Shown here piece after piece: positions 35,609 through 52,724 of a stretch of 64,000 nt of DNA (its first letter is position 1; each line of letters begins with the position of its first letter). Position numbers and translations under genes: made by a program. The notes under the pieces were generated by a model. The model was not told where the DNA came from. It made no database searches and saw only the letters and a list, made by a program, of their open reading frames with translations. The stretch lies in the IMG/VR virus record IMGVR_UViG_3300037725_000018, positions 124,001-188,000 of that record; one strand, 5' to 3'.

Positions 35609-35788
35609 ATGATTGTGCTTTACGAGTCTAGAAAAGAGTGGGGGGAAATCCGCGAATTTTCTGTTGGTCCCAACCCCACGATAGAGCTTCGGGGAGAAAC
35701 GTGCTCGATTGAAAACTTAGGTGATAACATTACAACCGTCAAATTCAAAAAAATTAAAATCAAGCGGGCCTTAAAAGAAATTTCATAA
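35609..35788 (+). CDS. Micro-protein family (MIVLYES)
   Basis: Family N-motif. Confidence 0.6.
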   Translation: MIVLYESRKEWGEIREFSVGPNPTIELRGETCSIENLGDNITTVKFKKIKIKRALKEIS

Positions 35789-35871
35789 AAAAGTAGGAAC
35801 CGGGCTTTATTCTCCCTGTTAAAGCAAACGGAAAAAGAGGGAACCCTTTTCACCAACGAACCCTGTTTGCT

Positions 35872-36153
35872 ATGAACGCCACGAAAGAAGAGATCCGCGA
35901 AAAGTTTTCTCTTCCGTCTGACAGTCGGGCAAGGAAGCTTCGGGACATGTTTTCGAAGCACGTCACGTATCTGGACAAGAGCCTAAACCGGGCTTGGAAG
36001 GGTCCGGTCGAAGCGGTTGTGCCGAAAGAGAAGGCTAAAGACATGCGGGAAGCAATGAGCTTCATCGGTGCTCATGTGGATAAGACCGAAAGCCTTCCGG
36101 GTGGCCGCGTTCGGCTTTACAGCCGGGGCTACTACGTTCACGTTGGGGCTTAA
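35872..36153 (+). CDS. Hypothetical protein
   Basis: Class A promoter at 35796; hairpin at 36188-36219. Confidence 0.75.
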   Translation: MNATKEEIREKFSLPSDSRARKLRDMFSKHVTYLDKSLNRAWKGPVEAVVPKEKAKDMREAMSFIGAHVDKTESLPGGRVRLYSRGYYVHVGA

Positions 36154-36310
36154 ATGAAGCGACAGCTTCCCATTCAAACCCGCAGGAAGGCCCACAGGGG
36201 GAAACCTCTTGTGGGCCTTTGCCATACCCTTTTCGGTTCCGAAAACTTCTTAGAAACAATTGTGTGGACAGGCAATATCTACCAGTAGACAAAGAAAAAT
36301 AACAAAGAAA

Positions 36311-36532
36311 ATGATTGCAGTTATAGTCTCGACGCCAAAAGACTACGGAGAAGCTTCAAAGCTTCGGATCTATCTTTCCGTTAATGACGTTTTTAAAGAA
36401 GGAAAAAAAGACTCCAAAGAAATTCAGGTTATTTCAACCCCAAATTTCACCCGAAAGCAAAACAACCAGATTGAAGAAAAGAGTTGGTTTAAAAATATAA
36501 GGTCTAAAAAAGAACAAGTAAAAAACCTTTAA
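36311..36532 (+). CDS. Micro-protein (MIAVIVST)
   Basis: Family N-motif. Confidence 0.6.
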   Translation: MIAVIVSTPKDYGEASKLRIYLSVNDVFKEGKKDSKEIQVISTPNFTRKQNNQIEEKSWFKNIRSKKEQVKNL

Positions 36533-36536
36533 CGGC

Positions 36537-36689
36537 ATGATCATCATACTTAGCGAAACAGAAGAAGAAGATTATAAAGTGGAAGAAGTATTTGAATATG
36601 GCCCCGCTTCTATGTCTTGGTATCTTACAGATGATGAAGTTTCGAGAGAAGAGATTAGACACATAAAAAAAGACCTAAAAACATGGTAG
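36537..36689 (+). CDS. Micro-protein (MIIILSE), 50 aa
   Basis: Manual translation. Confidence 0.6.
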   Translation: MIIILSETEEEDYKVEEVFEYGPASMSWYLTDDEVSREEIRHIKKDLKTW

Positions 36690-37015
36690 TTTTCTTTGAA
36701 TCAAAAACGGAATTTTCAAATGCGCTTTCGAACTCTACGTCCAAAAACACACTTCTTGATCTTTCGGTTCGCGTAAACGGTGTTAAGCTTTCGTACGCGG
36801 AACACGAAAAGACATACAAAAAACATGTAAGTCCCAAATCTTTAAAGTTAGCGCAGAAGCAGGGGACGGTATTTGGGCTTTCCGACGAAAAAAAGCGGCT
36901 TACTCTGTCCGGTGGAAAGCTTGTATACAATTCGGGTTCATTTGCACTTTCTTCTGCTTTGTTTTCAACGTTTAAGTCAATATCCGGCTCGCACAAAACT
37001 GGCAATATAATATAA
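36683..37015 (+). CDS. Micro-protein (MVVFFES)
   Basis: Family N-motif; VNG subfamily. Confidence 0.65.
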   Translation: MVVFFESKTEFSNALSNSTSKNTLLDLSVRVNGVKLSYAEHEKTYKKHVSPKSLKLAQKQGTVFGLSDEKKRLTLSGGKLVYNSGSFALSSALFSTFKSISGSHKTGNII

Positions 37016-37031
37016 CACAAGTTGAAAACCC

Positions 37032-37202
37032 ATGATTATCGTTGTGTCTGAAAATGAAAGAGATCGAAGAAGTCTTGTTGGCTTTCCTCTTCACAACAAG
37101 GGAGGATGCAAGCACGTACTAAACACAAAGCAATCTAAAGCCGCAAACTTGAAAAAGTCTATCGTGGCTAGAATTGAAATTGTGAACTTGCACGGTTGGT
37201 AA
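37032..37202 (+). CDS. Micro-protein (MIIVVSE), 56 aa
   Basis: Manual translation. Confidence 0.6.
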   Translation: MIIVVSENERDRRSLVGFPLHNKGGCKHVLNTKQSKAANLKKSIVARIEIVNLHGW

Positions 37203-37208
37203 AAGAAG

Positions 37209-37388
37209 ATGATTTTCATAATGTACGAAACAAAAAAAGAGCAGAGGCGTTCTTACATTAACGCAAATGGAGAAGGTTTTTGTTTTTTTGGTTGGGAGGG
37301 AATGAAACTTTTGCCGGAAACAAAACTTAAAAGAATTGTAATCGAAAGGTTCAGAGAAGCTAGAGTGAAAAATGGTCGTCATTTTTGA
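37209..37388 (+). CDS. Micro-protein (MIFIMYE), 59 aa
   Basis: Manual translation. Confidence 0.6.
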   Translation: MIFIMYETKKEQRRSYINANGEGFCFFGWEGMKLLPETKLKRIVIERFREARVKNGRHF

Positions 37389-37617
37389 AACAGAAAAAGA
37401 AGTCGTTGACGCAATTTCATATAAAAACGTTCCCGCAAAGTGGGAAGTCAACGGAAAACCAGTAGAGGCAAAAGAGGTTATCGTAATGCCAAATAACCTA
37501 ACAAAAAATCACTTTCCCGCCCACAAACAAATTGTGAAACGAAATCTTCACGAAAAGCAAGAAGACCTCTCGATTCTAAAAAAAGTTTGGTCGTTTGCAG
37601 CGTCAATCTTCAACTAA
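37372..37617 (+). CDS. Micro-protein (MVVIFET)
   Basis: Family N-motif; VNG subfamily. Confidence 0.65.
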   Translation: MVVIFETEKEVVDAISYKNVPAKWEVNGKPVEAKEVIVMPNNLTKNHFPAHKQIVKRNLHEKQEDLSILKKVWSFAASIFN

Positions 37618-37625
37618 AAATGCCC

Positions 37626-37799
37626 ATGCCCATAATCGTCGGAAAAAGAAAGGAGCTTAAAGAGGCTTACGTTATCCCAATGACACAAAGACAGTCCCGG
37701 ACCTACAAATGGTTTAAGCATTCTGAAGTAAGAAATATGGGAACTAAGATGGTCAAGGAGTTAATCAGAGAAATATCATCTGAACTTAAAAGAAATTGA
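37626..37799 (+). CDS. Micro-protein (MPIIVGK)
   Basis: Variant N-motif. Confidence 0.55.
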   Translation: MPIIVGKRKELKEAYVIPMTQRQSRTYKWFKHSEVRNMGTKMVKELIREISSELKRN

Positions 37800-37809
37800 A
37801 ACCCAAGTT

Positions 37810-37995
37810 ATGTTCATTGTATTTGAAAGCGAAAAAGAGCGAAAAGAAGCTGTAAACACCGACAAATCATCGGTTCGTTCATTTTGGATTGAGGAAGAAA
37901 TGATTTCAATTAAAAACGTCATGCGGGTTTACAGTTGGGACAACATGCGGCTCGGAAAGTCTCAGGCACGCAAAAAAGTAGCACATAGGCTTTAA
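37810..37995 (+). CDS. Micro-protein (MFIVFES)
   Basis: Family N-motif. Confidence 0.65.
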   Translation: MFIVFESEKERKEAVNTDKSSVRSFWIEEEMISIKNVMRVYSWDNMRLGKSQARKKVAHRL

Positions 37996-38002
37996 TAAGG
38001 AT

Positions 38003-38188
38003 ATGCAAATTATATTCGAGACGTACCTAAAATTTCAAGCTCACTCCACGCCGGAGCTTAGTTTTTCCGGCTTCAAGGTCGGGGAAGCAAGAGACGTGCC
38101 TTCCCGTTGCATCCATGTTAAAAACACAGACACGATCCGGTCTATAAAAAAGCGGCTTCGAAAAGGGCTCGCGCAAGGCAAAAATTGA
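38003..38188 (+). CDS. Micro-protein (MQIIFET)
   Basis: Family N-motif. Confidence 0.65.
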   Translation: MQIIFETYLKFQAHSTPELSFSGFKVGEARDVPSRCIHVKNTDTIRSIKKRLRKGLAQGKN

Positions 38189-38276
38189 CTTCCATATCGA
38201 GACCGGGTAGAGAAACGATTTCAAAAGACCTACCCCCCTTCAAATAACAAGTTCAATTGACCCCCCCCCCTTAAGG

Positions 38277-38438
38277 ATGGTTTTGATTGCACATTCGCAT
38301 AAAGAACTTCAAATTGCAGTTAGAATGTCACACGACCTTCTTCTTGTTCACGATTCGGTTTTCTTTCCCCGCTCTTCATACTGGATTCGAAACAAAGAAA
38401 ATATGCATCGGTTCATAAAAAGTGATTTGAAAGTGTAA
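38277..38438 (+). CDS. Micro-protein (MVLIAHS), 53 aa
   Basis: Manual translation. Confidence 0.55.
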   Translation: MVLIAHSHKELQIAVRMSHDLLLVHDSVFFPRSSYWIRNKENMHRFIKSDLKV

Positions 38439-38455
38439 AGATTAGTAGTAACATC

Positions 38456-38665
38456 ATGGTTGTTGTATATACAAAGAAAACATTAAGGAAGATAGAATCA
38501 AAGGTCGTGGAAAAGTTTTTAGAAGAAGATGAGGACGCTTTTATTATGCCAGTGGAGCTTCCGGTGTTGAACTACAAGACGCAGCGGAGCATTGTCCAAA
38601 ACGCGATTCAGTCTACGTCGTGGGAAGAATACACAAACCCTGAAATGCGACCTCAAAACATATGA
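38456..38665 (+). CDS. Micro-protein (MVVVYTK)
   Basis: Family N-motif. Confidence 0.6.
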   Translation: MVVVYTKKTLRKIESKVVEKFLEEDEDAFIMPVELPVLNYKTQRSIVQNAIQSTSWEEYTNPEMRPQNI

Positions 38666-38844
38666 TCATTATCCTTCCAGAAAACGAAAAAGAACACGGG
38701 GCAGCTCTTTGGCGTCGGTGGGACAAAAATCCCAAGATACTTGTCCTTCCATACCGAATGTCAAGTTTTCAAGGAGAAGGTGGGGCAGCCGTTTTCGGGA
38801 GGGTAAGGTTTCACGTAAAAGACAAACTAAGTAAAAAAGCATGA
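38662..38844 (+). CDS. Micro-protein (MIIILPE)
   Basis: Family N-motif; ATGA overlap. Confidence 0.65.
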   Translation: MIIILPENEKEHGAALWRRWDKNPKILVLPYRMSSFQGEGGAAVFGRVRFHVKDKLSKKA

Positions 38845-39035
38845 TGGTTTTGATCTTTCAAGATGAAGAGTAAAGAAGTAAGGTTCTTGAGCAGCCCGGA
38901 GCAACCTTTTTTTCAAAAGTCAAATGCCACGACAAGAACATTAGAATTAAAGAAACGTGTGAATTTCTTCAAGGCAGGCTAAGAAACTCTAAAAAGCTGT
39001 CTAAACTTTTGAGGCTAAAAATTAAAACGGCTTAA
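38841..39035 (+). pseudogene. Micro-protein with premature TAA (MMVLIFQDEE*RSKVLEQ...KIKTA*)
   Basis: In-frame TAA at 38871-38873; frame stays open to 39035. Confidence 0.65.
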
Positions 39036-39043
39036 TAGAAGAA

Positions 39044-39238
39044 ATGCAAATCATCTTCAACGACATAGACGAAATCAAATCGTGCATCGAAGAGTCAATA
39101 TATGCCAACTCGAAAACGCGCACCCTTAGAGGAACAAATGTTTCCATAAACGTTTGGGACATGTGGCACACCGATTATGTGCGAGCTAATGGAGCAGAGG
39201 TTATAAAAAAAGTTAGATCCAAATTGAAAGAAGAATGA
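39044..39238 (+). CDS. Micro-protein (MQIIFND)
   Basis: Family N-motif. Confidence 0.65.
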   Translation: MQIIFNDIDEIKSCIEESIYANSKTRTLRGTNVSINVWDMWHTDYVRANGAEVIKKVRSKLKEE

Positions 39239-39450
39239 TTATATACTTCGAACGTGGCGAAAAACAAAAAAGCCACCTGCGCGGCCTTTTTGGAAGGCAA
39301 AAGAAAACAGACCTTTCCTTCCACTTCGGAAAGATTGAAGACACAGACTGCTATTGGTATAACATTTCCGGAAACACAAAACGAAAAAGACCGGGTGAAG
39401 GTCTTAGAAGCAGAGAGCACTTAAAATTCATAACCGAAATTGCAATTTGA
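39235..39450 (+). CDS. Micro-protein (MIIYFER)
   Basis: Family N-motif; ATGA overlap. Confidence 0.65.
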   Translation: MIIYFERGEKQKSHLRGLFGRQKKTDLSFHFGKIEDTDCYWYNISGNTKRKRPGEGLRSREHLKFITEIAI

Positions 39451-39457
39451 AAACCCC

Positions 39458-39643
39458 ATGCATATACTTTTTGAGGACACACGCGAATTTAAAAAATACG
39501 ACGGGACGTTTTATTACTTCAACGGTGGGCCGGAAATTTACGCGCATGAAGCAAGTGTTTTGACATACAGACGCAAAAAACTTACATTAGACAAACAAAA
39601 AAGAAAGCGCGTAAAAAAGAGGCTCAAAAAAAACATCGCATAA
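39458..39643 (+). CDS. Micro-protein (MHILFED)
   Basis: Family N-motif. Confidence 0.65.
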   Translation: MHILFEDTREFKKYDGTFYYFNGGPEIYAHEASVLTYRRKKLTLDKQKRKRVKKRLKKNIA

Positions 39644-39662
39644 CGGCGGCAGCAGGCAAAAA

Positions 39663-39848
39663 ATGGTTATTATAGTATCGGAAGAAAACACAAAACAAAA
39701 AACGTGGACGTTTTACGATAAAAATTTTTTTTCAGATCACAAGACGTGGTTTATCCCCACGGAGTCTTATGAAATAGAGCAAGGAGAAAGGTTCCCAAGC
39801 GTCCGGAGAAAAGCGAATACATCCCATATCATCAAGTCTCTTTCTTAA
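39663..39848 (+). CDS. Micro-protein (MVIIVSE)
   Basis: Family N-motif. Confidence 0.65.
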   Translation: MVIIVSEENTKQKTWTFYDKNFFSDHKTWFIPTESYEIEQGERFPSVRRKANTSHIIKSLS

Positions 39849-39852
39849 ACCA

Positions 39853-40020
39853 GTGATTATAGCAATTCCAGAATCCAAATTTGAGTGGCAAGTTTTCTAT
39901 CAAGACTTACCTTTTAAAGATTTAAAAGTTGTCCCGGAACCCCGAATTTACGATAACTACATAGAAATGTCAAGAAAAAGAACGGTTCTTTCGATAATAA
40001 AGGAACAAACAACTTCTTGA
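39853..40020 (+). CDS. Micro-protein (GTG start, MIIAIPE), 55 aa
   Basis: Manual translation. Confidence 0.55.
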   Translation: MIIAIPESKFEWQVFYQDLPFKDLKVVPEPRIYDNYIEMSRKRTVLSIIKEQTTS

Positions 40021-40022
40021 AA

Positions 40023-40082
40023 ATGATCATCACGATTCCAGCGGAGAATAATAAAGAAAGAGAAAAATGGGAATGCTTGTAA
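40023..40082 (+). pseudogene. Truncated micro-protein remnant MIITIPAENNKEREKWECL*
   Basis: Family N-motif, only 19 aa. Confidence 0.45.
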
Positions 40083-40249
40083 TCTTTGAAAATTTTGAAG
40101 AAATGGACAAAGTTTCAAAACCGAAGGGAAAGTACGAGCTTGTCGGGGAAGCAAAAGTCCCCGCGTTCAACGTCCACGTCAAAAGAAACTTCAAACGCCC
40201 AAGCGTGTTTAGAAGAGAAATGAAAATAGCTGTGTTCTCTAAGTTGTAA
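40073..40249 (+). CDS. Micro-protein (MLVIFEN)
   Basis: Family N-motif. Confidence 0.65.
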   Translation: MLVIFENFEEMDKVSKPKGKYELVGEAKVPAFNVHVKRNFKRPSVFRREMKIAVFSKL

Positions 40250-40428
40250 GAGCAAAAGCAATAAGACAGCCATCCCGACCACTTTTCCTTGGACATGATA
40301 CAGACAAAGAGTATTACAACATCCGGTCACACAAACCCGAAAGCGGTTTATTAGTAGGTGGTTTGCATATAAACGGGGAAAAGCTTTCTAGCCATTGGAT
40401 ATATGTCAGGTGAGTGAATGGAAGAAAG

Positions 40429-40461
40429 CCCCACACAAGGCAAATAAAACCTCACGTGAGG
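40429..40461. repeat. CCCCACACAAGGC imperfect hairpin, copy 1
   Basis: Related copies at 41217 and 46867. Confidence 0.7.
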
Positions 40462-40788
40462 TAAAATATGGTTTTTATATTGAGACCGGGGCGAAAACCA
40501 TTTCATTTTTACCGGGGGTACCGATTATAGCAAGTTATTTTTACCCCCACCCCCCTGTAGAATGTACACAGCCTTGTAGTAGATGGTAGAATGTACATGT
40601 GAATTCAAAAAGCCGTTTCAAAACGAAATGCAAAAGCTTCAATTCAAGACAAAGCACATGTAGTTTTTACCGTTTGCAGTTTTGGCATGGAATTTGCCTT
40701 CTGCGTCAAAACAAGACGTGTAGCTTTTACAAGGGAGGTGGGCGTTGGCATACAGTTTGCTTTAAAAAACCATAAACAGATAATTGGC

Positions 40789-40950
40789 ATGATTGTTGTT
40801 ATCGAAAGAAGAGAAGACATAAACGGCTCCAGCCTTAAATTTTTTGATTCTGAAATAAGGCTAAAAGTAGGCAGGGCAGTTGTTCGTAGGTGGTGCCCGT
40901 CTGGGTGGCCTTTACGATACAAAAGAGAGTACATCCGAAAGCATATTTGA
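40789..40950 (+). CDS. Micro-protein (MIVVIER)
   Basis: Family N-motif. Confidence 0.6.
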   Translation: MIVVIERREDINGSSLKFFDSEIRLKVGRAVVRRWCPSGWPLRYKREYIRKHI

Positions 40951-40969
40951 AAACCAGTTGAAAAAAGAT

Positions 40970-41143
40970 ATGATCGTTATCCTTGTTGAAGAGAAGGCCA
41001 ATTCTTTTAGCGTCGAAGACTTTGAAAAAGAAGTTGCAGTTATCCCAAGTGCAAAGGCGTACGTCTCTCTTTCGGTTCTTTCAAATGTTCAAGGGCTAAA
41101 GATGCGGAGGCGACATGTGGATAATGCCATTCGAAAGCTTTAA
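40970..41143 (+). CDS. Micro-protein (MIVILVE)
   Basis: Family N-motif. Confidence 0.6.
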   Translation: MIVILVEEKANSFSVEDFEKEVAVIPSAKAYVSLSVLSNVQGLKMRRRHVDNAIRKL

Positions 41144-41216: not shown

Positions 41217-41250
41217 CCCCACACAAGGCAAATTGGCGCCTCGCGTGGGG
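41217..41250. repeat. CCCCACACAAGGC imperfect hairpin, copy 2 (convergent junction, possible terminator)
   Basis: CCCCACACAAGGC-AAATTGGC-GCCTCGCGTGGGG. Confidence 0.75.
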
Positions 41251-41277
41251 AATTGGGTGCCCGAATGTGGCCGACGT

Positions 41278-43176: not shown

Positions 43177-43995
43177 AGGGTTAAGTGTTTGGGATGTTGC
43201 GGATTGTCTGCCGAAAAATGCGTGTGCTTAAAAAGGTGTTGGAAGATGAAGTTCCGTGAAGCTTGTGTGAAGTGTGAATACTCTGTGAAGAGGGAACACT
43301 TTGTTGGTTTGAAGGTTTAAGTTAGTGCAGGGGGAGGAATATCTTTTTTTGCGTAAGTAGATTCTGTGAAGTGGAATGAATATTGCTTCGGTAGCAAATT
43401 CCATTCCAACCCTTCCGGCAGGTGTTCATTCAATATTGATTTATGTTTCCTGTAGAGACTCAAGTAAACTTATTTTAGCCCCCAACCCTCTTAGACGCCG
43501 TTGAACGGGCTTTGGGCTTTTATTTGAATATTGAATATTGAATATTGAACGCCAAGTGCCAACCAACCTGCCTTCAGCGGCTACAGACGTAGATTCTATG
43601 TTTCTCGCTCGGGGTTTGGTAAACTTATTTATTGTTGGAACGGGTTTTGCTACCGTAGACATACAATAACACATCAAATACTATGCCACACCCCAAGGCA
43701 CATAGATCGCCTCTAAGCGGTTTAAGTGTTTGTAGGTATGTGGGGCAAGGCCATGTGGCGAAATCCACGCACACACGCGCACGTGCGCCCGTGAGGCTTG
43801 TCTTGATGTTAGCGGTGCAACGCTGTCCCCGCGTCTTTTGACACACGCTCCCTTGTGAGCTTAGGGACCTAAGTATGAGAAAAGATGCGGGGACGCTTTT
43901 CACGTGTCCCCGTTGACAGACGCCGAAGTTTTTTGATACACATTTGCCGGGTGGGAACAAACTTATAGTTTCCCCCGTTTTAGCGCCAAAAAAAG

Positions 43996-44169
43996 ATGAT
44001 CGTCGTTATAGACAAAAAAGAAAGAGAAGACTTCGCTGCAACCAAGTTTCACAAGTTCGTAAACGTCCCTCCGGGTATGAGAAAAGACGTGGGGTGTCTT
44101 CATAACTTAGAAGACGGGTCCGGGCACCTTCTTCGGTTTGCAAAAGTTTTAGTCAAGTCTTACTTGTGA
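43996..44169 (+). CDS. Micro-protein (MIVVIDK), 57 aa
   Basis: Manual translation. Confidence 0.6.
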   Translation: MIVVIDKKEREDFAATKFHKFVNVPPGMRKDVGCLHNLEDGSGHLLRFAKVLVKSYL

Positions 44170-44243
44170 AAGAAAAAGCTGACGTGCGTGGTCCCCGTAT
44201 ACAATTTTTATTAGCCAATGCCAATGTCAATTTTTATCCGTTT

Positions 44244-44456
44244 ATGGTTGTTCTTATTGAAACAAAAACAGAAGACGAAGAGTTTTACAATTACGTGTCC
44301 GGGATGCGGGTTTTGGTTTTGGGGACTTTTGAAACGGTCCCTTTATATCGAATACCGGATTTTGAAATTTTTAAGGTAGCCAAAACTGAAGGCTTCTGTG
44401 TAAAGGAGAATGGTCGGCTCACAATTCTTCATCACGGAATAGCAAAAGTGAGGTAA
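44244..44456 (+). CDS. Micro-protein (MVVLIET)
   Basis: Paralog of next ORF. Confidence 0.7.
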   Translation: MVVLIETKTEDEEFYNYVSGMRVLVLGTFETVPLYRIPDFEIFKVAKTEGFCVKENGRLTILHHGIAKVR

Positions 44457-44461
44457 AAAAG

Positions 44462-44665
44462 ATGGTTCTTGTTTTCGAAGACGAAACAGAAAAAGAAAGG
44501 TTTGACAAACAGGTGTCCGAAACGGGCGTGGGAGTGTTTGGCCTTTTTGAAACCCTTTCTTTGTATAAAGAAAAAGCATTTAAGGTTCTTCGGTTTGCCA
44601 AAAGAGAAGGGCTAATTACAAGAGAAGACGGGCGTCTCATTTTAGTTTACTATGGAGTAGAGTAA
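44462..44665 (+). CDS. Micro-protein (MVLVFED)
   Basis: Paralog of previous ORF. Confidence 0.7.
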   Translation: MVLVFEDETEKERFDKQVSETGVGVFGLFETLSLYKEKAFKVLRFAKREGLITREDGRLILVYYGVE

Positions 44666-44681
44666 AACGTAGGGAAAAAAG

Positions 44682-44906
44682 ATGGTTATTCTTGTTGAAA
44701 ACAAAAGAGAAAAAACCCCTTTGAAAAAAGCGTGTGGGGGAAGAGTTGAAGACGAATTTGAACTTTTAAAAGAGCGGATTCTGTTGCACGCGGGGCACTC
44801 GTCTCCGATGGATTTTCTAGTGTACATCAAAAAAAGGCTCCACTCTTGCCCAAGCACCGGAAGACTTACCTGCGACATAACGCCAATACGTAACAACAAA
44901 AAATAA
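44682..44906 (+). CDS. Micro-protein (MVILVEN)
   Basis: Family N-motif. Confidence 0.65.
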   Translation: MVILVENKREKTPLKKACGGRVEDEFELLKERILLHAGHSSPMDFLVYIKKRLHSCPSTGRLTCDITPIRNNKK

Positions 44907-44915
44907 CAGACAGTT

Positions 44916-45113
44916 GTGGTTGTTATCATTGAAGACTCGAAACTTGTTTCAGAAATTCAAGACTACTTCTCCGTCTGTTTAGAGGAAAATCTTGATGTGT
45001 ATGAGCAGGTTTGGCTTTGCCGTGTGGATAGCAGCAAGCCGGAATATTTGCGTTTTATGAAAAAACGCGGATTTGACAGGATAGAAGAGAACAAAAGAAT
45101 GATTTTTAAGTAA
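44916..45113 (+). CDS. Micro-protein (MVVIIED)
   Basis: Family N-motif. Confidence 0.65.
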   Translation: MVVIIEDSKLVSEIQDYFSVCLEENLDVYEQVWLCRVDSSKPEYLRFMKKRGFDRIEENKRMIFK

Positions 45114-45165
45114 GCATACGCAAGGGAAAAATTAGCTCCTTCATCAAAACTGCGTAAAGTGTGCA

Positions 45166-45351
45166 ATGATTGTTTTCGTTGTTGAAAGCACAGAAGGCAA
45201 GTCCGCGTTTTTTGATTTGACAAACAAAAACCGGAAAAACTTTGGAAGCGGCGTAAGCGTGGTTTTCTCTCATAAGTACGTCGGCTCCGGAACGGCCCGA
45301 GAATGCGCTTTGAAAGTCAAACAAAAGATCAAAAAATCCAAGCAAAAGTAA
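45166..45351 (+). CDS. Micro-protein (MIVFVVE)
   Basis: Family N-motif. Confidence 0.6.
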   Translation: MIVFVVESTEGKSAFFDLTNKNRKNFGSGVSVVFSHKYVGSGTARECALKVKQKIKKSKQK

Positions 45352-45357
45352 TGAGCC

Positions 45358-45543
45358 GTGGTTATCCTAATAGAAAGCAAAAAAGAGGAAAAAGAGCTTA
45401 ATAACTTAGTGAGGAGTTCTGGTTTTGAACTTGACTTTCTTGAAAGACTTCCTGCCTTTTGGCACGTGCCGGAACTTTTGCTGCGTGACCTGAAAACGGT
45501 AGGTTTTAAAACAGAACAAAGGCGATTAAAATTTAATCGGTAG
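45358..45543 (+). CDS. Micro-protein (MVILIES)
   Basis: Family N-motif. Confidence 0.65.
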   Translation: MVILIESKKEEKELNNLVRSSGFELDFLERLPAFWHVPELLLRDLKTVGFKTEQRRLKFNR

Positions 45544-45558
45544 TAACCGAATCAGCTA

Positions 45559-45753
45559 ATGATTGTCATTTTGAAAAACATACAGGAGGGCAGGCATTTA
45601 GAAAATGTTAAGGGGGTGGGTCCCAAAAGAGAAGAGGTCGTATACGAATATAGATATGGGCCACGCCTGCGGGTTCAAATCCTAAGAGATTGCAGAAAAG
45701 GGGCAAAAGAAGGTGGGGAGCGGCTGAAAATTCCGGGCCGAATACGTCAGTAA
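45559..45753 (+). CDS. Micro-protein (MIVILKN)
   Basis: Paralog of next ORF. Confidence 0.7.
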   Translation: MIVILKNIQEGRHLENVKGVGPKREEVVYEYRYGPRLRVQILRDCRKGAKEGGERLKIPGRIRQ

Positions 45754-45769
45754 AAACAGATATGTAAAT

Positions 45770-45970
45770 ATGATCGTCATTGCAAATAACTTAAATGAAG
45801 ACCGTTGGATAGTGGGACACCCGAATATCGAAAGAAAAGAAATTGCCTACGTTTACGTGTGGACACGGGAAGAGAGGACCCGTCTTTTAAAAGACTTCAG
45901 GCGGGGGATAAAAAAGAGTGGCAAAAGGCTAAAAATGCCCGATCACATGGAAACAAGTAAAAAATGGTAA
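45770..45970 (+). CDS. Micro-protein (MIVIANN)
   Basis: Paralog of previous ORF. Confidence 0.7.
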   Translation: MIVIANNLNEDRWIVGHPNIERKEIAYVYVWTREERTRLLKDFRRGIKKSGKRLKMPDHMETSKKW

Positions 45971-45981
45971 AAACGCTTCCC

Positions 45982-46173
45982 ATGATATTCATCTTCAAAG
46001 AGTTTGAGTACTCAAACAACATTGACTTCTTTAAAGAGACGATTATTTCAAGCGACGGGTTGGTAAAGTCCGGTTCTGTCGTTGCCGATTCTCCCGGAAC
46101 AATCCCTCTAACAAAGAGTTCATACAAAAAAATCAAAGAATACGTCAAAACCCGGTTGTCAAACAAACAGTGA
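45982..46173 (+). CDS. Micro-protein (MIFIFKE)
   Basis: Family N-motif. Confidence 0.6.
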   Translation: MIFIFKEFEYSNNIDFFKETIISSDGLVKSGSVVADSPGTIPLTKSSYKKIKEYVKTRLSNKQ

Positions 46174-46355
46174 TCATCATCGAAGAAAACATGTTTGAAC
46201 AGAAGCTAACGTTTCCCATTCGGCTTGCCCCCGAAGAACGAGTAAGCCGAAAAGACGCTTTCTTAAACGGGTGTATCTCTGCGCTTACTTTGCATAACCC
46301 AAGTGAAGGCTGGACGAAAAGGCGGCTTTGTTTAATCACCGAACGTTACCAATAA
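46170..46355 (+). CDS. Micro-protein (MIIIEEN, GTG start)
   Basis: GTGA overlap. Confidence 0.6.
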   Translation: MIIIEENMFEQKLTFPIRLAPEERVSRKDAFLNGCISALTLHNPSEGWTKRRLCLITERYQ

Positions 46356-46374
46356 CGAAACCCTTTGAAAAGAT

Positions 46375-46572
46375 ATGGTCGTTTGCTTTGAAAACGAAAA
46401 TGAACTTGTTTCCAATACAACGATTCTTTTCGGGCGCAAGTCCGTAAACGGAATCATTCTTGACCCTGAAGAAATTTGTATAGTCAAAAGACCGGATAAT
46501 ATCCATGCCCAAGTTGAAAAAAGCTTTTCGACCTGTCGCCTCACCTGTTTTGTAAAAAGTTCACGCACATAA
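46375..46572 (+). CDS. Micro-protein (MVVCFEN)
   Basis: VNG subfamily. Confidence 0.65.
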   Translation: MVVCFENENELVSNTTILFGRKSVNGIILDPEEICIVKRPDNIHAQVEKSFSTCRLTCFVKSSRT

Positions 46573-46583
46573 AAACCGGACTC

Positions 46584-46784
46584 ATGGTTGTCTATTTTGA
46601 AAAAAGAACGGAGTTTCTAAACCATTCACAATTCACAAATCGATTTCGAACAACAATAACCGTTAACGGGCAGGTTCTTGTCAATTGCGAATATATCGTC
46701 TCGCCCAATAAAAAAGCGCCCCTTCAAATAAAAGAAAAGGACGTTCCTTTGTATCCGGGAACGCGCCTTGTTTTCGTTTTTTAA
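46584..46784 (+). CDS. Micro-protein (MVVYFEK)
   Basis: VNG subfamily. Confidence 0.65.
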   Translation: MVVYFEKRTEFLNHSQFTNRFRTTITVNGQVLVNCEYIVSPNKKAPLQIKEKDVPLYPGTRLVFVF

Positions 46785-46866
46785 ACGCTTGCCCAAAGCT
46801 TTGCAGAAGGCGCAAGACGGGTTTTCGGCTTTCGGTCTTTAAGGTACCCTTTACATACAGAGAAAA

Positions 46867-46900
46867 CCCCACACAAGGCGTCCATTTGCCTCATGTGGGG
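46867..46900. repeat. CCCCACACAAGGC imperfect hairpin, copy 3 (convergent junction, possible terminator)
   Basis: CCCCACACAAGGC-GTCCATTT-GCCTCATGTGGGG. Confidence 0.75.
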
Positions 46901-46928
46901 CCTCTTTTGTTTATGTGTTGGGGGGGGA

Positions 46929-47408
46929 TTACAAAAGCCTTCTTAGGGCTCGAAGAAGCGCCCCGCGAAAGTAGTTTCCGCTTTGCCGGGGGTCTCCGTC
47001 TCCGTAGGATCGGTACTTAACAAGCCCCCTACGCCGAAGTGCCCTCTTTGTTGCCGTTGGGTTTGCTGAAGTGACAAGCGGTTTGGTCGGGTCGTCTGCG
47101 TGAATGACGGTTGCGCGAATCACCTCCTTCATGGTTTCGGAAAGCTCTTCGGTGGACTGAAGGCGTGCAAGCTCGACCATTGACTTGCAATCCTCCGGGT
47201 CCCACATCCGATACCAACCGTCCGCTAAGTTGCGTGCAGGGTTAATGTCAAGAAACTCCGCAAGCCGATCAAGAGCCTCCTTGACCTCCTTTTCGCTTAT
47301 GTTAACACCATCGGCATTTAAAGCCATGTAAACGTCATGGGCGGTGAAGGCTTGCCCGTCCTCGTATTCGTTTTTCACCGTACTTGCAGTTTTCAAAATT
47401 ACGTCCAT
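46929..47408 (-). CDS. Hypothetical protein, possibly winged-helix DNA-binding
   Basis: FTAHDVY..ISEKEVKEAL; ATKRALRRRGLV; class A promoter at 47484. Confidence 0.7.
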   Translation of the reverse strand: MDVILKTASTVKNEYEDGQAFTAHDVYMALNADGVNISEKEVKEALDRLAEFLDINPARNLADGWYRMWDPEDCKSMVELARLQSTEELSETMKEVIRATVIHADDPTKPLVTSANPTATKRALRRRGLVKYRSYGDGDPRQSGNYFRGALLRALRRLL

Positions 47409-47524
47409 CGTCTCTTTTGTTTGTTTGTTGGAAAGGACTTCCCTCTCTGTTTCGTGTGCTTAAAATAGAAAAGCCCGTGGACAGTTCCACGGGCCGTGTG
47501 AAGCGTTTGTTAACAAGTGATTTT

Positions 47525-47785
47525 TTAAGAAAGGTCCCACGTGATCGATTCAACCGCATCAGCCTTATTTCGGACACTTTCCAAATCCGAATGCACTTGA
47601 ATCATCTTTTTGCGCTGGAAGGCAAGACCGGCCTTCCCATCAATTTGAATGTACGCCATTGCGACGTTTGCGGTTTTTTCCGGGTCGTAGTATTCGGGGT
47701 CCCCGTAAGAGTGTCTTCCTCGCTCTCGAAGCCGGGACTCGATCTCTTCTTGAATTTTCGAAAGCGCGTCTTCTACGATGCTCAT
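47525..47785 (-). CDS. Hypothetical protein
   Basis: ATG ORF. Confidence 0.7.
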   Translation of the reverse strand: MSIVEDALSKIQEEIESRLRERGRHSYGDPEYYDPEKTANVAMAYIQIDGKAGLAFQRKKMIQVHSDLESVRNKADAVESITWDLS

Positions 47786-47818
47786 GGGCTTTTGGTTTTG
47801 GTTTGTGAAAATTCGGCT

Positions 47819-48028
47819 TTAAGAGAAAGGATCTCGAAGATAGTCGTACCGGATATCGAAGTATGCCATTTTCTTCGTGTCAGTTACCCCGACGATGTTT
47901 CCGGTATCTTCGTCCTTTACGTGCCACTCGCTTAGGCTTTTTCGGACTTCAAAAGACCGACCGTCTTCTCGTTTTGCGCGGTAGCGGCCCCGCTCGATCT
48001 TGCTTGTTTCAATTTCAAACGTGTCCAT
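47819..48028 (-). CDS. Hypothetical protein
   Basis: Class A promoter at 48105. Confidence 0.7.
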   Translation of the reverse strand: MDTFEIETSKIERGRYRAKREDGRSFEVRKSLSEWHVKDEDTGNIVGVTDTKKMAYFDIRYDYLRDPFS

Positions 48029-48152
48029 TTTTCAAGCCTTGTTTTATCGTTTGAAAACGACCTCCCCTTTCTTGCGTGTATATAAACTGGTGGCCCACTG
48101 GACGGTTCCAGTGGGCCACATGAAGATTCGGTAAAATAAAGCCCGTAGCCTG

Positions 48153-48359
48153 TCACATCTTTCGGGAAGGGTTTCGGCTCTTTTCAAGGGTGTGCCGGGT
48201 AAACCCGTTTAGCCACCACTTTCGAAACGTTGAGCCTATCGCATACGGGCAATCGCTTACCCACCCGCCTTCCTTTTTCGCAGCATATCCTTCCTTGCGA
48301 ATTTCTTCTTTTAGGTCCGAATGAGGGAGAGGCTCCATGTTTCCAACAAGGTCTTTCAT
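48153..48359 (-). CDS. Ribosome modulation factor (Rmf)-like protein
   Basis: EGYAAKKEGGWVSDCPY...RKWWLNGF matches the Rmf G-Y-x-A...CPY...W-L-x-G pattern. Confidence 0.65.
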   Translation of the reverse strand: MKDLVGNMEPLPHSDLKEEIRKEGYAAKKEGGWVSDCPYAIGSTFRKWWLNGFTRHTLEKSRNPSRKM

Positions 48360-48400
48360 CGTCTTTTTGGGTTGGTTGGTAAAGGTCTTGTGGATTTGAT

Positions 48401-48634
48401 TTAGCTGAAGTTTCGGGCAAGAACCATCATGGCAGCTTTCATAAGCTGCTTTTCGGTCACGTCCGCTTTAGTATGCACAGACAGGTACTTGTACGACGAG
48501 CCGGGGCGAACCCCAAGGGTCACGTCAAAATCCATGTAGTGACCGGAGGACTCCAAGAGGTCTTTAACTTTTTCCCCCTGACCCGGAAGAATGTACCCAA
48601 GGTTTGCAGTCGTGCGGCTACCAGAAGTTTCCAT
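48401..48634 (-). CDS. Hypothetical protein
   Basis: ATG ORF. Confidence 0.7.
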   Translation of the reverse strand: METSGSRTTANLGYILPGQGEKVKDLLESSGHYMDFDVTLGVRPGSSYKYLSVHTKADVTEKQLMKAAMMVLARNFS

Positions 48635-48734
48635 TGCGTTGGGAAGCTTTTAAGTTCAACAGGCGGCTTTGAAAAAAACGCCGGAAGGCGGGTTTCACCC
48701 CCCGGCGCGTTTGGCTACTTTTGATTTTGGATTA

Positions 48735-48959
48735 TTAGAAGAACTGTTCGTCAAGCCACTCCTCAACGATGTGGAATTCTTCGTCGGTGATCTTCTCACC
48801 GTCCTTTTCCCCATCGGAGGGGTAGTGCTCGATCCAAACGGCCCGTTCGACCTCGACGGACGTTTCCGCAGGGGAACGCCGCGTTGCCTTCATGTGGCTA
48901 ACGCTCATGTCAACTTCGATCACGCCGTCTTCGTGATGAACCGATTCGGTAACTGTCAT
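48735..48959 (-). CDS. Small acidic protein
   Basis: Class A promoter at 49047. Confidence 0.7.
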   Translation of the reverse strand: MTVTESVHHEDGVIEVDMSVSHMKATRRSPAETSVEVERAVWIEHYPSDGEKDGEKITDEEFHIVEEWLDEQFF

Positions 48960-49093
48960 GGCTGTAAGCTGCTTTTGTTTGAAAGATCAAACCCGAAGGG
49001 GCTTTCCCCCTTCTTGCGCTACTTTACACACGCGAAAAACGGATTGGTTCCCGGCCAAAGTGTGAAGCCTTTGTGAAGCCAAGCCCCGGCCCG

Positions 49094-49375
49094 TTAAAGA
49101 AGCTCACCGAGCCGGATCGGTTCCGGGGAAGAGCGGAGGGCTTCCCGCTCGCGCTTGCGGGACCGAAGCGCGGACATGCGCTTTTTGATGTTGCGCCTCT
49201 GCTCTTTGGCTTGCCGCTCTTTTTCGCGGCGAATGGCTTCTTTATACTCCGCTTTGGAGTCGTAAGAAGTCCAGTAGCGGCCCAAAGGCCCGTCCCACTC
49301 GATCCGCAGGCCATCAAAGTCGCTAAAGCGGGTGGAAGCGCGAACGGCTTTTTGGGTAGGCTCGCAAATATTCAT
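49094..49375 (-). CDS. Small basic protein
   Basis: Class A promoter at 49437. Confidence 0.65.
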   Translation of the reverse strand: MNICEPTQKAVRASTRFSDFDGLRIEWDGPLGRYWTSYDSKAEYKEAIRREKERQAKEQRRNIKKRMSALRSRKREREALRSSPEPIRLGELL

Positions 49376-49647
49376 TGTCTTTGGGGGATTGGTTCCCTCT
49401 CTTTCGCAATACCTTACACGCGGGGAAAGCGGGTCTGTTCCGGTTTAGGATGTGAAGAAGCTGTAAGCTCCTTCGGGCCTTTTGTTTTGCTTTTAAGCGT
49501 GTTTTGAACCTGCCTTTCCCCTACCCATTTCCACGGAGAGAAAAGTCCTTGTGGGCTTTCACAAAAACCTCAAAAGCCGCTGCGTAAAGGCGTGCCCCGC
49601 CGAAAATGGGCAGGGCACGCAGGCGCTACTTGCTTTTTTGGTTTCTT

Positions 49648-49860
49648 TTAAGCTTCCGGCGTGTAGGAAACAAACGCCGGGTCGCTTTCGCTTTCGAGCT
49701 TTTCGTCAATCCCGGAAAGCTCTTCCCGTTCGATCTTGTTGCGAACGTCGTAGTGAACCACGTCCCAACCACCACGGGCGTCAAGAAAGTAAATCACCTT
49801 CTCCCCCGGCTCGATGTGGTTTTCGGCGTAGTCACGCGCTTGGGCAAGAGTCATAACCAT
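49648..49860 (-). CDS. Small acidic protein
   Basis: Class A promoter at 49939. Confidence 0.7.
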   Translation of the reverse strand: MVMTLAQARDYAENHIEPGEKVIYFLDARGGWDVVHYDVRNKIEREELSGIDEKLESESDPAFVSYTPEA

Positions 49861-50028: not shown

Positions 50029-50047
50029 GGTTCTGTGTGGCTGACTT

Positions 50048-50442: not shown

Positions 50443-50754
50443 TTATGAAGACAGAGAGCTTTCAAGGTCTTCAATCACCATTTCAACGCGGCTTAAAACC
50501 GGGCTTTCCTTCTCTTCGGATACAGACGTTCGGTACATTTGTCCGGTCATTTCCATAAGCCTCTCGTACGCAAATCTAGACGGGCTTCCGTATGGAAACG
50601 TTTCCACGTCTTTCATGTCTTCTGCGTGAGCCGCCAAAACCTTGTACGTGGCCTTTAAGTCCGAATAGGTGCCACGGGTTATGATCGCCTCTTTTATCTT
50701 TCGAAAATGGCTTAGAAGGCGTTGTGCAACCTCTCGCTTGCGTTTGTCTTTCAT
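50443..50754 (-). CDS. Hypothetical protein (MKDKRK)
   Basis: Class A promoter at 50823. Confidence 0.7.
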   Translation of the reverse strand: MKDKRKREVAQRLLSHFRKIKEAIITRGTYSDLKATYKVLAAHAEDMKDVETFPYGSPSRFAYERLMEMTGQMYRTSVSEEKESPVLSRVEMVIEDLESSLSS

Positions 50755-50904
50755 GTCGGCTTGGTTTTGTTTTTCTAAAAGTAGAGTGAATGCGCGTACG
50801 TATACAAAAAGAAAAGGTCGGTGTTCCCGCCTTTTTTGGAACACACAAGGCCACCTGTTAGTTTGGGCCTCTTGTAGAAAGCCAACAAACAAAAAGCGAA
50901 ACCG

Positions 50905-51105
50905 ATGATACAAGTTGTTGTGGATACAAGTGAAGAATCCGCTTGGATGCAGACGTTTTCAAAAGAGTTTCCAACTGAAGAAGTGGACTATTTTCATTCT
51001 GGTAAGGCAATGGAAGAGCTTGGGCTAGCCCCAATAGAAACCGGATATCGAATCTACATTTCAAATAAGCTTGAACACAGGTTTAAAGCGACAAAAAAGA
51101 CATGA
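50905..51105 (+). CDS. Micro-protein (MIQVVVD)
   Basis: Family N-motif; array 3. Confidence 0.6.
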   Translation: MIQVVVDTSEESAWMQTFSKEFPTEEVDYFHSGKAMEELGLAPIETGYRIYISNKLEHRFKATKKT

Positions 51106-51257
51106 CGATATTGATTGAAAAACCCAATGAGGCAAACCGTTTTTTAAACTTTAAGATACGGTCGGGTGAACGCATGATTGCAAAACCTAGTTCCCTCAAA
51201 AACAAAATTATTGCATTGCGCCAAATCAAAGAATCTGTAAGGGCCGAAAAGAAATGA
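51102..51257 (+). CDS. Micro-protein (MTILIEK), 51 aa
   Basis: Manual translation; ATGA overlaps on both sides. Confidence 0.6.
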   Translation: MTILIEKPNEANRFLNFKIRSGERMIAKPSSLKNKIIALRQIKESVRAEKK

Positions 51258-51478
51258 TCATCATTGAAAGACAAAGTCAAAAACGGTGGGAAGTTACGGT
51301 TCGCTCTGCAAAAAGGGAAGTTTTTACCAAAGAAACACATTCGGAAATGGGGGGTAGAATCGAAAAAAAGTATTCCGTCAAACATCAAGACTCCAATGTA
51401 AAAAGAGTCTTGCGCCACATGCTAAATAATTACGACCACGAATACTCTTTAGTTACCGCTAGCAGCTTCTTGAATTAG
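51254..51478 (+). CDS. Micro-protein (MIIIERQ)
   Basis: Family N-motif. Confidence 0.6.
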   Translation: MIIIERQSQKRWEVTVRSAKREVFTKETHSEMGGRIEKKYSVKHQDSNVKRVLRHMLNNYDHEYSLVTASSFLN

Positions 51479-52036
51479 TTCCTTGACAAATTCAACCCGA
51501 ACGCTGTCAACGCCTGTTGGAACGCCAGCTTGAGACTTGTCAACTGCAGGAACCTCTTCGGTTCCCAAAGCTGCCGGGACGTAAGCTTGAAGAATAAAGG
51601 CGATTTGCTCGTGTGGACGCCTCATGTACCGGGAATTAAAATTAATATTGTCAACGGGAACGCCAAACATCTTGAACATAATCGGGGTTCTGTTTGCGAT
51701 TTCAACAGAATCGGCTAAAAGTTTTGTGTCCATTTCCCCCGTGTTGTGGTGAAGAAGGTGAATGATCTCGTGGTTTAAAGTTTGGCTGTCCCGCCACTTT
51801 GCAAGAACGATTTCCCCCTCTTTGCGATACATACCCGCAATTGTGTTCTTTTCGTTGATTTTGTCCAAAACTTCAACGGGAATGTCTTGCCCGATTTGGT
51901 TTTCCAAGGCCGAAAGAACCTCTTTTTCACCACGAGTGAGCCCGTGCCCGTTTTTTTTCTTATCTACGAACGTGAAGAGAAAGAAAAGGGTCAAAAACGA
52001 AATCAAAAAAGTGCGTGAAATTTTCATTGGCTTCAT
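51449..52036 (-). CDS. Membrane-anchored zincin-like metallopeptidase
   Basis: N-terminal TM, IAGMY, HEIIH, downstream PHEQIA. Confidence 0.7.
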   Translation of the reverse strand: MKPMKISRTFLISFLTLFFLFTFVDKKKNGHGLTRGEKEVLSALENQIGQDIPVEVLDKINEKNTIAGMYRKEGEIVLAKWRDSQTLNHEIIHLLHHNTGEMDTKLLADSVEIANRTPIMFKMFGVPVDNINFNSRYMRRPHEQIAFILQAYVPAALGTEEVPAVDKSQAGVPTGVDSVRVEFVKELIQEAASGN

Positions 52037-52121
52037 TTTTGCTGTTTGTGGAAAGAAACTTTCTTTTGTCGTCTTTGTTACGTGAATAGACAAACGACGA
52101 AAAGGTTTCTTTTTTGCTTAT

Positions 52122-52298
52122 ATGATTTTTATTATCACCGAAGACCGAAACGAGTTTTTCGAAGCTTGTGGCATGTACCAACACAGGCACGCGCCAAGTG
52201 CTCTTGCCCAAGTGCTTCCGGACCACGTTGAAATCGCTTCCCTGCCATACAGAAACAAGTTTGCAATCAAAAAACACCTTTCAAAAACCCCAAAGTAA
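52122..52298 (+). CDS. Micro-protein (MIFIITE), 58 aa
   Basis: Manual translation. Confidence 0.6.
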   Translation: MIFIITEDRNEFFEACGMYQHRHAPSALAQVLPDHVEIASLPYRNKFAIKKHLSKTPK

Positions 52299-52300
52299 AC

Positions 52301-52585
52301 ATGTACGTAATAATTAGCGCCGAAGAAAAACGTAAGCTTTCAAAACAAAACTTCCTATCCGGCCTAGAGTGGAGGCTGGACGTGCCTTCCTCAATTCGCG
52401 TAGTAAGAAATTTAAAGATAAACAGACAAAGAATCAAAGAAACCAAATCTGACATAGCAAGGCATTACCTCCGAAAAATGAAAACAGATAGAACTTGGAT
52501 CACCGGAAGTTTAAAGGACAAAGAGGCGCTAGAGATCATTCAAGGCAAAAAGTTAAAAGACTGTCATGATCATTATTTTGTATAG
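52301..52585 (+). CDS. Micro-protein (MYVIISAEE)
   Basis: Family N-motif. Confidence 0.6.
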   Translation: MYVIISAEEKRKLSKQNFLSGLEWRLDVPSSIRVVRNLKINRQRIKETKSDIARHYLRKMKTDRTWITGSLKDKEALEIIQGKKLKDCHDHYFV

Positions 52586-52724
52586 AACAAATAAAGAGTG
52601 GGACGGAGTTCACGACGCTTTTAACACAGAAGCCTCTGACCCTTCCGAAGACTTGTTTATCATTCCGGATGAAAAAAGCCACTACTTTACCGCGAAACTA
52701 ATTTTTGGCACAAAAAACGCTTGA
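52566..52724 (+). CDS. Micro-protein (MIIILYR), 52 aa
   Basis: Manual translation. Confidence 0.55.
   Translation: MIIILYRTNKEWDGVHDAFNTEASDPSEDLFIIPDEKSHYFTAKLIFGTKNA

Follow-up and report, generated by a model that had tools for sequence, protein, structure and literature searches.

About 48–49 tiny genes, most of them in tandem arrays, form a genuine and undescribed family in a 64,000-nucleotide stretch of viral DNA (hereafter the window; positions 124001–188000 of IMGVR_UViG_3300037725_000018, a viral contig of 223,357 bp). Their products have the first ten residues in common (Met, four aliphatic residues, Glu, three residues, Glu). This start-locked signature is unusual, and its concept has its nearest precedent in the internal proteins of phage T4. 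We tentatively favor the reading that this is a lineage-specific, fast-evolving multigene family in which an N-terminus-locked beta-strand would act as a constant docking or assembly handle. Coordinates are window positions unless another contig (L003, L009 or L012) is named.

Members and arrangement of the family

Forty members lie on the plus strand (35609, 36311–41143, 43996–46784 and 50905–52724), a count that takes in 37620–37799, whose product starts M-P-M-P-I-I-V, and nine are scattered over the minus strand. The original prediction, made from the letters and open reading frames (ORFs) of the window, had listed 51 micro-proteins in tandem arrays; the arrays and all nine minus-strand copies checked out, but the total is about 48–49. 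Profile, composition and codon analyses were run on 45 members. The family is laid out as follows (aa, amino acids; nt, nucleotides):

35609–35788, plus strand: solitary member, 59 aa, start M-I-V-L-Y-E
36311–40249, plus strand: array 1a, tandem genes of 50–110 aa, entered as 19 with 18 starts listed (36311, 36537, 36683, 37032, 37209, 37372, 37620, 37810, 38003, 38277, 38456, 38662, 39044, 39235, 39458, 39663, 39853, 40073)
40789–41143, plus strand: array 1b, two genes (40789–40950 and 40970–41143) after a 540-nt geneless gap
43996–46784, plus strand: array 2, 13 tandem genes of 57–74 aa (starts 43996, 44244, 44462, 44682, 44916, 45166, 45358, 45559, 45770, 45982, 46170, 46375, 46584)
50905–51478, plus strand: array 3a, three overlapping genes (50905, 51102, 51254) with ATGA overlaps
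52122–52724, plus strand: array 3b, genes 52122, 52301 and 52566, all three called as genes on contig L009
619–813, minus strand: scattered member, 64 aa, M-A-I-V-I-L-T-E, motif shifted by one residue
10298–10528, minus strand: scattered member, 76 aa, M-N-I-V-F-Q, a weaker match (Asn at residue 2)
10533–10853, minus strand: scattered member, 106 aa, M-V-I-L-I-T-R-D
23784–23960, minus strand: scattered member, 58 aa, M-H-I-I-F-E-E
24215–24472, minus strand: scattered member, 85 aa, M-I-L-V-I-E
28855–29076, minus strand: in the MoxR–DnaJ interval, 73 aa, M-I-V-I-E
29092–29409, minus strand: in the MoxR–DnaJ interval, 105 aa from a TTG start, (M)-I-V-I-S-K
29406–29630, minus strand: in the MoxR–DnaJ interval, 74 aa, M-V-I-L-E-G-E
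31365–31565, minus strand: member adjoining an IF1-like gene, 66 aa, M-V-I-L-T-N-K

The genes abut or overlap, as had been predicted: the median gap is about 9 nt, and the coordinates place an ATGA or GTGA overlap at five junctions. In array 1a, where intergenic gaps range from −17 to +199 nt and gene 37620 carries an M-P-M-P prefix, the in-frame codon-usage score is positive for most genes, and most were also called by the Joint Genome Institute (JGI) and Logan gene callers. Two of the three array 3a genes are called on contig L009. A hairpin (35548–35576) lies just upstream of the solitary member.

The motif is selected at the amino-acid level

How far does the motif exceed chance? We defined a strict pattern (M, four residues from [IVLFYCM], zero or one residue, then E or D) for ORFs of 45–120 aa and took 100 dinucleotide-preserving shuffles as the chance baseline. 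The window holds 30 such ORFs against a shuffle mean of 1.5 and a maximum of 5, so the motif is more frequent than in random ORFs; a looser pattern gave 52 matches versus 9 in shuffles. Most of the strict matches (23 of 30) fall in the 35.6–46.8 kb interval of the plus strand. The motif starts none of the 37 larger genes and none of the 22 small genes outside the family, all of which begin M-K, M-S, M-D or M-E, and it is missing from all 15 interleaved minus-strand genes, as the original prediction had it.

Residues 2–5 are hydrophobic in 87–98% of members, 35 of the 45 have an acidic residue at position 6 or 7, and 32 have one at position 10 or 11, which bears out the second Glu foreseen 3–5 residues further on. 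The (Ile+Val)/Leu ratio is 7.2 at residues 2–5 versus 1.8 in the bodies, pointing to a beta-strand. When the start regions were aligned, the second position of codons 2–5 carried 1.0–1.45 bits and the first and third positions little, a signal with 3-nt periodicity that leaves the wobble position free. Synonymous codons for Ile, Val, Phe and Leu at residues 2–6 follow genome usage (P = 0.49, 0.057, 0.08 and 0.51, respectively). Information at codon position 2 combined with normal synonymous usage makes a composition effect unlikely, and on the same grounds we rejected a DNA-level motif, a promoter and an RNA operator. Thus, the motif is selected at the amino-acid level and is locked to Met1, so that the constant N-terminus proposed at the outset holds as a feature of the protein. 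Direct repeats in the array region are short coding similarities only.

The same data bear on an explanation at the nucleotide or translation level, under which the start would serve as an RNA operator or a downstream box, or would keep the initiation region unstructured where the host lacks Shine-Dalgarno pairing. Start codons in the window are preceded by A-rich leaders without a Shine-Dalgarno sequence, a pattern described for Bacteroidetes (PMC6847099), and the host is probably a member of the Bacteroidota. Moreover, the phage has an IF1-like gene (in the related contig L012, described below, IF1 lies inside an array), and some family genes are translationally coupled through ATGA overlaps. 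But the periodicity peaks at codon position 2, synonymous choice is not significantly off genome usage, and ATGA or GTGA overlaps occur at five junctions only. A general translation optimum was rejected because none of the other 59 genes of the window begins with the motif. We regard this explanation as largely refuted and, overall, as very improbable.

The ORFs are real genes

Contig L003 (5 kb, from another sample) is syntenic with window positions 43821–49665 at 82–90% DNA identity. It carries orthologues of 11 of the 13 array 2 genes, nearly all of the same length, with 72–95% protein identity and ratios of nonsynonymous to synonymous substitution (dN/dS) of 0.08–0.54, the same range as in neighboring non-family genes. 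Pooled dN/dS between the window and L003 is 0.31 for residues 2–11 and 0.30 for the rest, so the bodies are constrained between strains and not hypervariable. The label "hypervariable" in the original prediction therefore fits the paralogues, which cannot be aligned, but not the orthologues, which stay similar under purifying selection; its "diversified library" is an overstatement, since the comparison of strains shows bodies and N-terminus under equal constraint. Other contigs covering arrays 1 and 3 are 99.7–100% identical to the window, which limits the selection test to array 2. In-frame codon usage is best in 41 of the 45 members. Thus, dN/dS and conserved lengths in array 2, codon usage and independent gene calls all show that the family ORFs are real genes.

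Could the ORFs nevertheless be chance non-coding frames in repeated DNA? Many fall below usual gene-calling cut-offs, and no member has a homologue outside the lineage. Against this stand purifying selection with conserved ORF lengths between strains, a twenty-fold enrichment of the motif over shuffles, the codon usage just described, the occurrence of the same gene class in a second phage (L012) and the lack of any DNA repeat structure past the short coding similarities. For array 2 the artefact is refuted, and for the family as a whole we give it next to no credence.

Bodies are unrelated, basic and subject to turnover

Among the members, phmmer linked only 44244, 44462 and 45358 and, separately, 45559 and 45770. 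Alignment added 44916 to the first group, which did not grow in an iterated hidden Markov model (HMM) search run without residues 1–12. These subfamilies, the only ones related in sequence, both lie in array 2 and are recent tandem duplications. In an all-against-all hhalign comparison with residues 1–12 removed, the median was 8.4 for family pairs versus 8.8 for family-to-unrelated pairs, and no family pair exceeded 20% probability. Apart from the two small subfamilies, the bodies are thus unalignable past about residue 12, as had been judged by eye.

Members have a median size of 63 aa (interquartile range 58–70), compared with 86 aa for other small genes. Their bodies carry a net charge of +7.7 per 100 aa versus −1.9 in neighboring small genes, which confirms the Lys/Arg richness noted originally, and most members have a net positive charge over their last 20 residues. 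Cys, Ser and Thr together make up 13.6% of the bodies, and Cys 1% of residues.

Gene 45770 is absent from L003, indicating recent gain or loss, and duplicates are present at several stages of divergence, one of them strain-specific. Thus, the family turns over by tandem duplication and by gene gain and loss. Outside the arrays, members 23784 and 24215 flank gene 23962–24213, which is conserved in L012; neither member has a counterpart at the syntenic place (L012 12815–13525), so single members seem to insert in conserved modules.

A second phage keeps the start and the size

L012, a 36-kb Logan contig, carries the closest distinct relative of the neighboring VWA protein (50% identical) and has the same gene order (DnaJ, MoxR, VWA, NT5C, ClpC, RNA ligase). 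Upstream of DnaJ lie about 22 same-strand ORFs (median 60 aa, interquartile range 52–65 aa) that start Met-Ile/Val, then Val/Ile, Ile/Leu and a hydrophobic residue. An IF1 homologue (Pfam eIF-1a, L012 5544–5756) is embedded in this mini-gene array, and two further members sit between DnaJ and MoxR, as in the window. The L012 bodies have no similarity to those of the window members and are neutral, not basic, and Glu6 and Glu10 are weak. L012 therefore keeps only the start and the size, which means that the clade conserves the start-locked aliphatic run and the size. Together with the hhalign comparison, this upholds the constant N-terminus as the sole element that paralogues, and two divergent phages, have kept in common.

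Further out, L014 and L015 (38–39% VWA identity) have no such genes within 10 kb of the ClpC/MoxR/VWA cluster. The complete 484-kb genome LR756508, which has the cluster, contains none anywhere: its strict matches number 15, at most 2 per 5 kb, versus 25 and up to 10 per 5 kb in the window. Megablast and tblastn searches of GenBank phages found nothing, and the source contig had no DNA match among 50,697 GenBank phage records. IMG/VR scans for homologues returned the source contig only, and a scan of IMG/VR for DNA encoding M-I-V-I-F-E returned 90 chance loci, none with an array. Neither a word-indexed search of 5.8 billion proteins nor an exhaustive HMMER search of 1.84 billion representatives gave anything outside the lineage, and a metagenome scan with a conserved neighboring gene gave nothing.

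Known families and predicted structures

With all 45 members and E values up to 10, no Pfam family matched more than one member and none reached E < 0.005; ten members compared with PHROGs gave no match below E 0.08. AlphaFold modeled the four-member subfamily at a predicted local distance difference test score (pLDDT) of 49, with a strand at residues 2–5, a helix at 8–19 and then strand-helix-strand-strand. For 37810–37995, modeled with 22 aligned members, pLDDT was 69; residues 1–7 are extended and unpaired, followed by a helix (8–14), a hairpin (24–33) and a second helix (43–60). An unpaired segment of this kind is suggestive of a strand needing an outside partner. The N-terminal beta-strand of the original prediction is thus recovered, predicted as a strand or as an extended segment that leads into a helix, but its pairing differs between the two models. 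Foldseek gave no match below E = 1 against the PDB and BFVD. Across Pfam, PHROGs, HMMER and Foldseek, the earlier statement that no described family has this architecture holds.

Several candidate identities were rejected. A glutaredoxin/NrdH fold was the best Foldseek suggestion (E > 1, probability ~0.1, from the model with pLDDT 49), and with Cys at 1% the bodies lack the CxxC expected of it. Ribosomal protein bS21 was considered for its size, its basic tail and what we take to be a Bacteroidetes-type M-I-I-V start; no member matches Pfam Ribosomal_S21, even at E up to 10. By-eye likenesses to CsrA-like, receiver, PIN and Toprim N-termini had no Pfam support at E up to 10, and a mid-protein hydrophobic-hydrophobic-Pro motif, also seen by eye, is not enriched (11 versus 7.5 expected, P = 0.10).

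Handle or fold core?

What does the constant start do? Under the docking reading, the family would grow by tandem duplication, gene gain and loss, and diverge until three features remain: the Met1-locked start (four mostly beta-branched aliphatic residues, an acidic cap at 6 or 7 and Glu at 10), a size of about 60 aa and, in this phage, a basic C-terminal helix. The all-hydrophobic N-terminal edge strand might pair with a like strand to form homo- or hetero-oligomers or, alternatively, insert by beta-augmentation into one common partner, and the divergent basic body would decide what each member targets. On this view, the arrays would consist of accessory genes transcribed together, probably serving host takeover or anti-defense.

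The plainest rival is that the members are ordinary diverged paralogues with one small fold, the N-terminal strand being its buried core and the last trace of ancestry, with no role as a signal. The narrow size distribution here and in L012, the visible series of duplication and divergence, the pairing of residues 2–5 within the monomer in the subfamily model and the equal dN/dS of N-terminus and body all suit it. Yet profile comparison finds no excess similarity of the bodies over unrelated proteins, and L012 loses the body charge, Glu6/Glu10 and the C-terminal helix while keeping the Met-aliphatic start. The motif is also fixed at residue 2 in nearly all members, whereas core strands normally tolerate N-terminal extensions, and the 37810–37995 model leaves the segment unpaired. 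Because a 60-residue monomer offers little room to bury both faces of four consecutive beta-branched hydrophobics, we prefer the docking strand and consider the diverged fold unlikely, although handle and fold core are inseparable on this evidence.

Several points weigh against the docking reading. The two structural models, of low to moderate confidence, disagree on whether the N-terminal strand pairs within the monomer. The narrow size and shared charge are equally compatible with one diverged fold that has the strand for its core. The selection test comes from one array, the others resting on codon usage and gene calls by others, and the Bacteroides host-type promoter consensus is absent upstream of the arrays.

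A stronger version, which we find doubtful, is that the Met-aliphatic4-acidic start is a new N-terminus-locked sorting or docking signal by which one phage machine handles about 50 diversified mini-effectors. Such a machine could be a scaffold common to all members, a timer based on a protease, or the prohead core, which would package and inject them.

Comparison with known systems

The internal proteins of T-even phages form a very diverse group whose only common feature is a capsid-targeting sequence (PMC3012670), an N-terminal propeptide of 10–20 aa that is removed by the gp21 prohead protease (PMC7411985). The cleavage motif of the SPN3US protease ends in Glu, and the cut falls just after it (PMC7411985). 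Like the family described here, the T-even proteins (IPI, IPII, IPIII and Alt) are unrelated, fast-evolving, small and often basic, and an N-terminal peptide of about 10 residues ending in Glu is their only bond (PMC3012670, PMC7411985). Their bodies have diversified counter-defense roles, and by analogy the window proteins might too.

By this precedent, the first 6–10 residues could be a propeptide that targets each member to the prohead and is cut after Glu, the basic bodies being packed and injected as a diversified anti-defense set. In the window family, residues 1–10 are indeed shared by otherwise unalignable proteins with small basic bodies, as in internal proteins. In 31 of 45 members, a putative cleavage site ([ILV]-x-E, read from the sequence alone) lies between residues 1 and 12, and in 16 it falls exactly at residues 4–6. 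In L012, however, Glu6 and Glu10 are weak while the hydrophobic start is kept. The family peptide is a beta-branched aliphatic run, whereas the T-even peptide is an amphipathic segment; the two families have no sequence likeness, nor is the start known to resemble the T4 targeting sequence. There are about 48 copies here versus 3–5 in T-even phages, and a cargo of so many kinds would be without precedent. The arrays consist of tiny tandem genes separate from the structural genes and resemble early regions, not virion modules; a scan of window proteins revealed neither a prohead protease nor a scaffold gene. We consider a propeptide quite improbable.

The host-takeover or accessory arrays of large phages and the multigene families of large DNA viruses offer another likeness: tiny orphan genes packed on one strand, which come and go through tandem duplication, differ in content between strains and have no homologues in databases. 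We know of none that is united by a start-locked motif over unalignable members. Libraries of ribosomally synthesized and post-translationally modified peptides (RiPPs), such as prochlorosin-type precursors, and conotoxin-like sets likewise have many small paralogues with a conserved N-terminal part and a divergent rest. In contrast to these, the constant part here is only 5–10 residues, and the bodies, in which Cys, Ser and Thr are not abundant, are under purifying selection as units of folded-protein size. A RiPP precursor library was rejected: the constant part (about 10 residues) falls short of a leader of at least 15, Cys+Ser+Thr is at the level given above, and no modifying enzyme was found among the neighboring genes scanned.

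Neighboring genes and the proposed partners

The left half of the window is transcribed from the minus strand. It also codes for an IMPDH/GMP-reductase-family protein, an RNA ligase, a ferritin-like protein and DnaJ, and a MoxR-type ATPase gene adjoins a gene for a 633-aa protein whose relatives bear VWA domains. Features of the whole window with assigned positions are:

1327–1743, minus strand: transfer-messenger RNA (tmRNA), tag peptide ending ...ASLAA
1885–1956 and 13773–13847, minus strand: tRNA-Ala(TGC) and tRNA-Cys(GCA)
5001–5678, minus strand: peptide deformylase (Pfam E = 4e-28)
8281–8595, minus strand: thioredoxin with a WCGPC motif
18992–20959, minus strand: ClpC-like double-AAA protein, 655 aa
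31028–31267, minus strand: IF1-like (S1/OB fold) translation initiation factor, adjoining DnaJ
52744–53226, minus strand: weak NUMOD1/HNH match between array 3 and the tail-fiber genes, suggesting a homing endonuclease

The ClpC-like protein, 56% identical to a gene of LR756508, lacks the N-terminal adaptor-binding domain, has a short UVR-type middle domain and carries an L-G-F tripeptide at the usual position of ClpP-docking loops, where we presume such a loop would serve ClpP docking. One may therefore ask whether the start is an N-terminal degron or unfoldase handle, making the members short-lived substrates of the ClpC-like protein with host ClpP, or of host Lon or ClpXP, in a timed early pulse. 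N-terminal hydrophobic recognition motifs are known for ClpX, and the phage codes for a tmRNA with a ...LAA tag and a peptide deformylase in addition to this unfoldase. Yet LR756508 has the cluster and not one such gene in 484 kb, and in L014 and L015 members are lacking within 10 kb of it; neither ClpP nor an adaptor turned up in the window, and a degron by itself leaves the uniform size unexplained. On balance, a degron appears improbable.

The partner proposals of the original prediction fare no better. Nothing ties the motif to ClpC or MoxR/VWA, given the same three relatives, and the peptide deformylase gene is confirmed but no evidence links the motif to deformylase control. Acidic residues flanking a hydrophobic run are unfavorable for Hsp70-type binding.

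The right end of the window consists of giant tail-fiber-like genes coding for proteins of 1956, 1066 and 1460 aa (53983–63969, minus strand; L009 1–13201). These proteins have internal repeated segments in common (75–86% DNA identity), and beyond the window the run is followed by a protein with a Peptidase_S74 chaperone domain.

Intergenic elements

A hairpin element (A-run, CCCCACACAAGGC, loop, GCCTCRCGTGGGG) occurs in three copies (40429–40461, 41217–41250 and 46866–46901). The conserved copies lie just past plus-strand array ends, and the copy at 41217–41250 reads as a putative strong intrinsic terminator for convergent minus-strand genes. Intergenic elements of 39–57 nt are repeated at 77–90% identity (34447–34485/50362–50400, 34866–34922/35522–35578 and 41576–41629/41942–41995), one pair being inverted and 16 kb apart. 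Lying upstream of non-family genes, they are probably, with the hairpins, what the original prediction called class-A promoters.

Compared with L003 3448–3541, window positions 47428–48144 contain extra minus-strand genes (47525–47785 and 47819–48028) that are absent from L003. This insertion is bounded by two copies of a regulatory-looking repeat of about 90 nt, suggesting that a cassette was gained or lost when repeated intergenic elements recombined. Two regions, 40250–40788 (540 nt) and 43180–43995 (800 nt), lack a convincing ORF and match nothing in Rfam at the gathering threshold; they could be regulatory regions or new RNAs.

Significance

Even on the plainest reading, this is a clear example of a viral multigene family whose duplication, divergence past recognition and selective keeping of five residues are visible in a single locus, and size cut-offs make gene callers overlook a substantial fraction of such a genome. 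If the N-terminal strand is a shared handle, the T4 principle of one short address for many cargoes would extend to a far larger set in an unrelated jumbo phage, and the N-terminal peptide might serve as a portable targeting tag. On the same condition, about 50 orphan proteins would become approachable through a single interaction.

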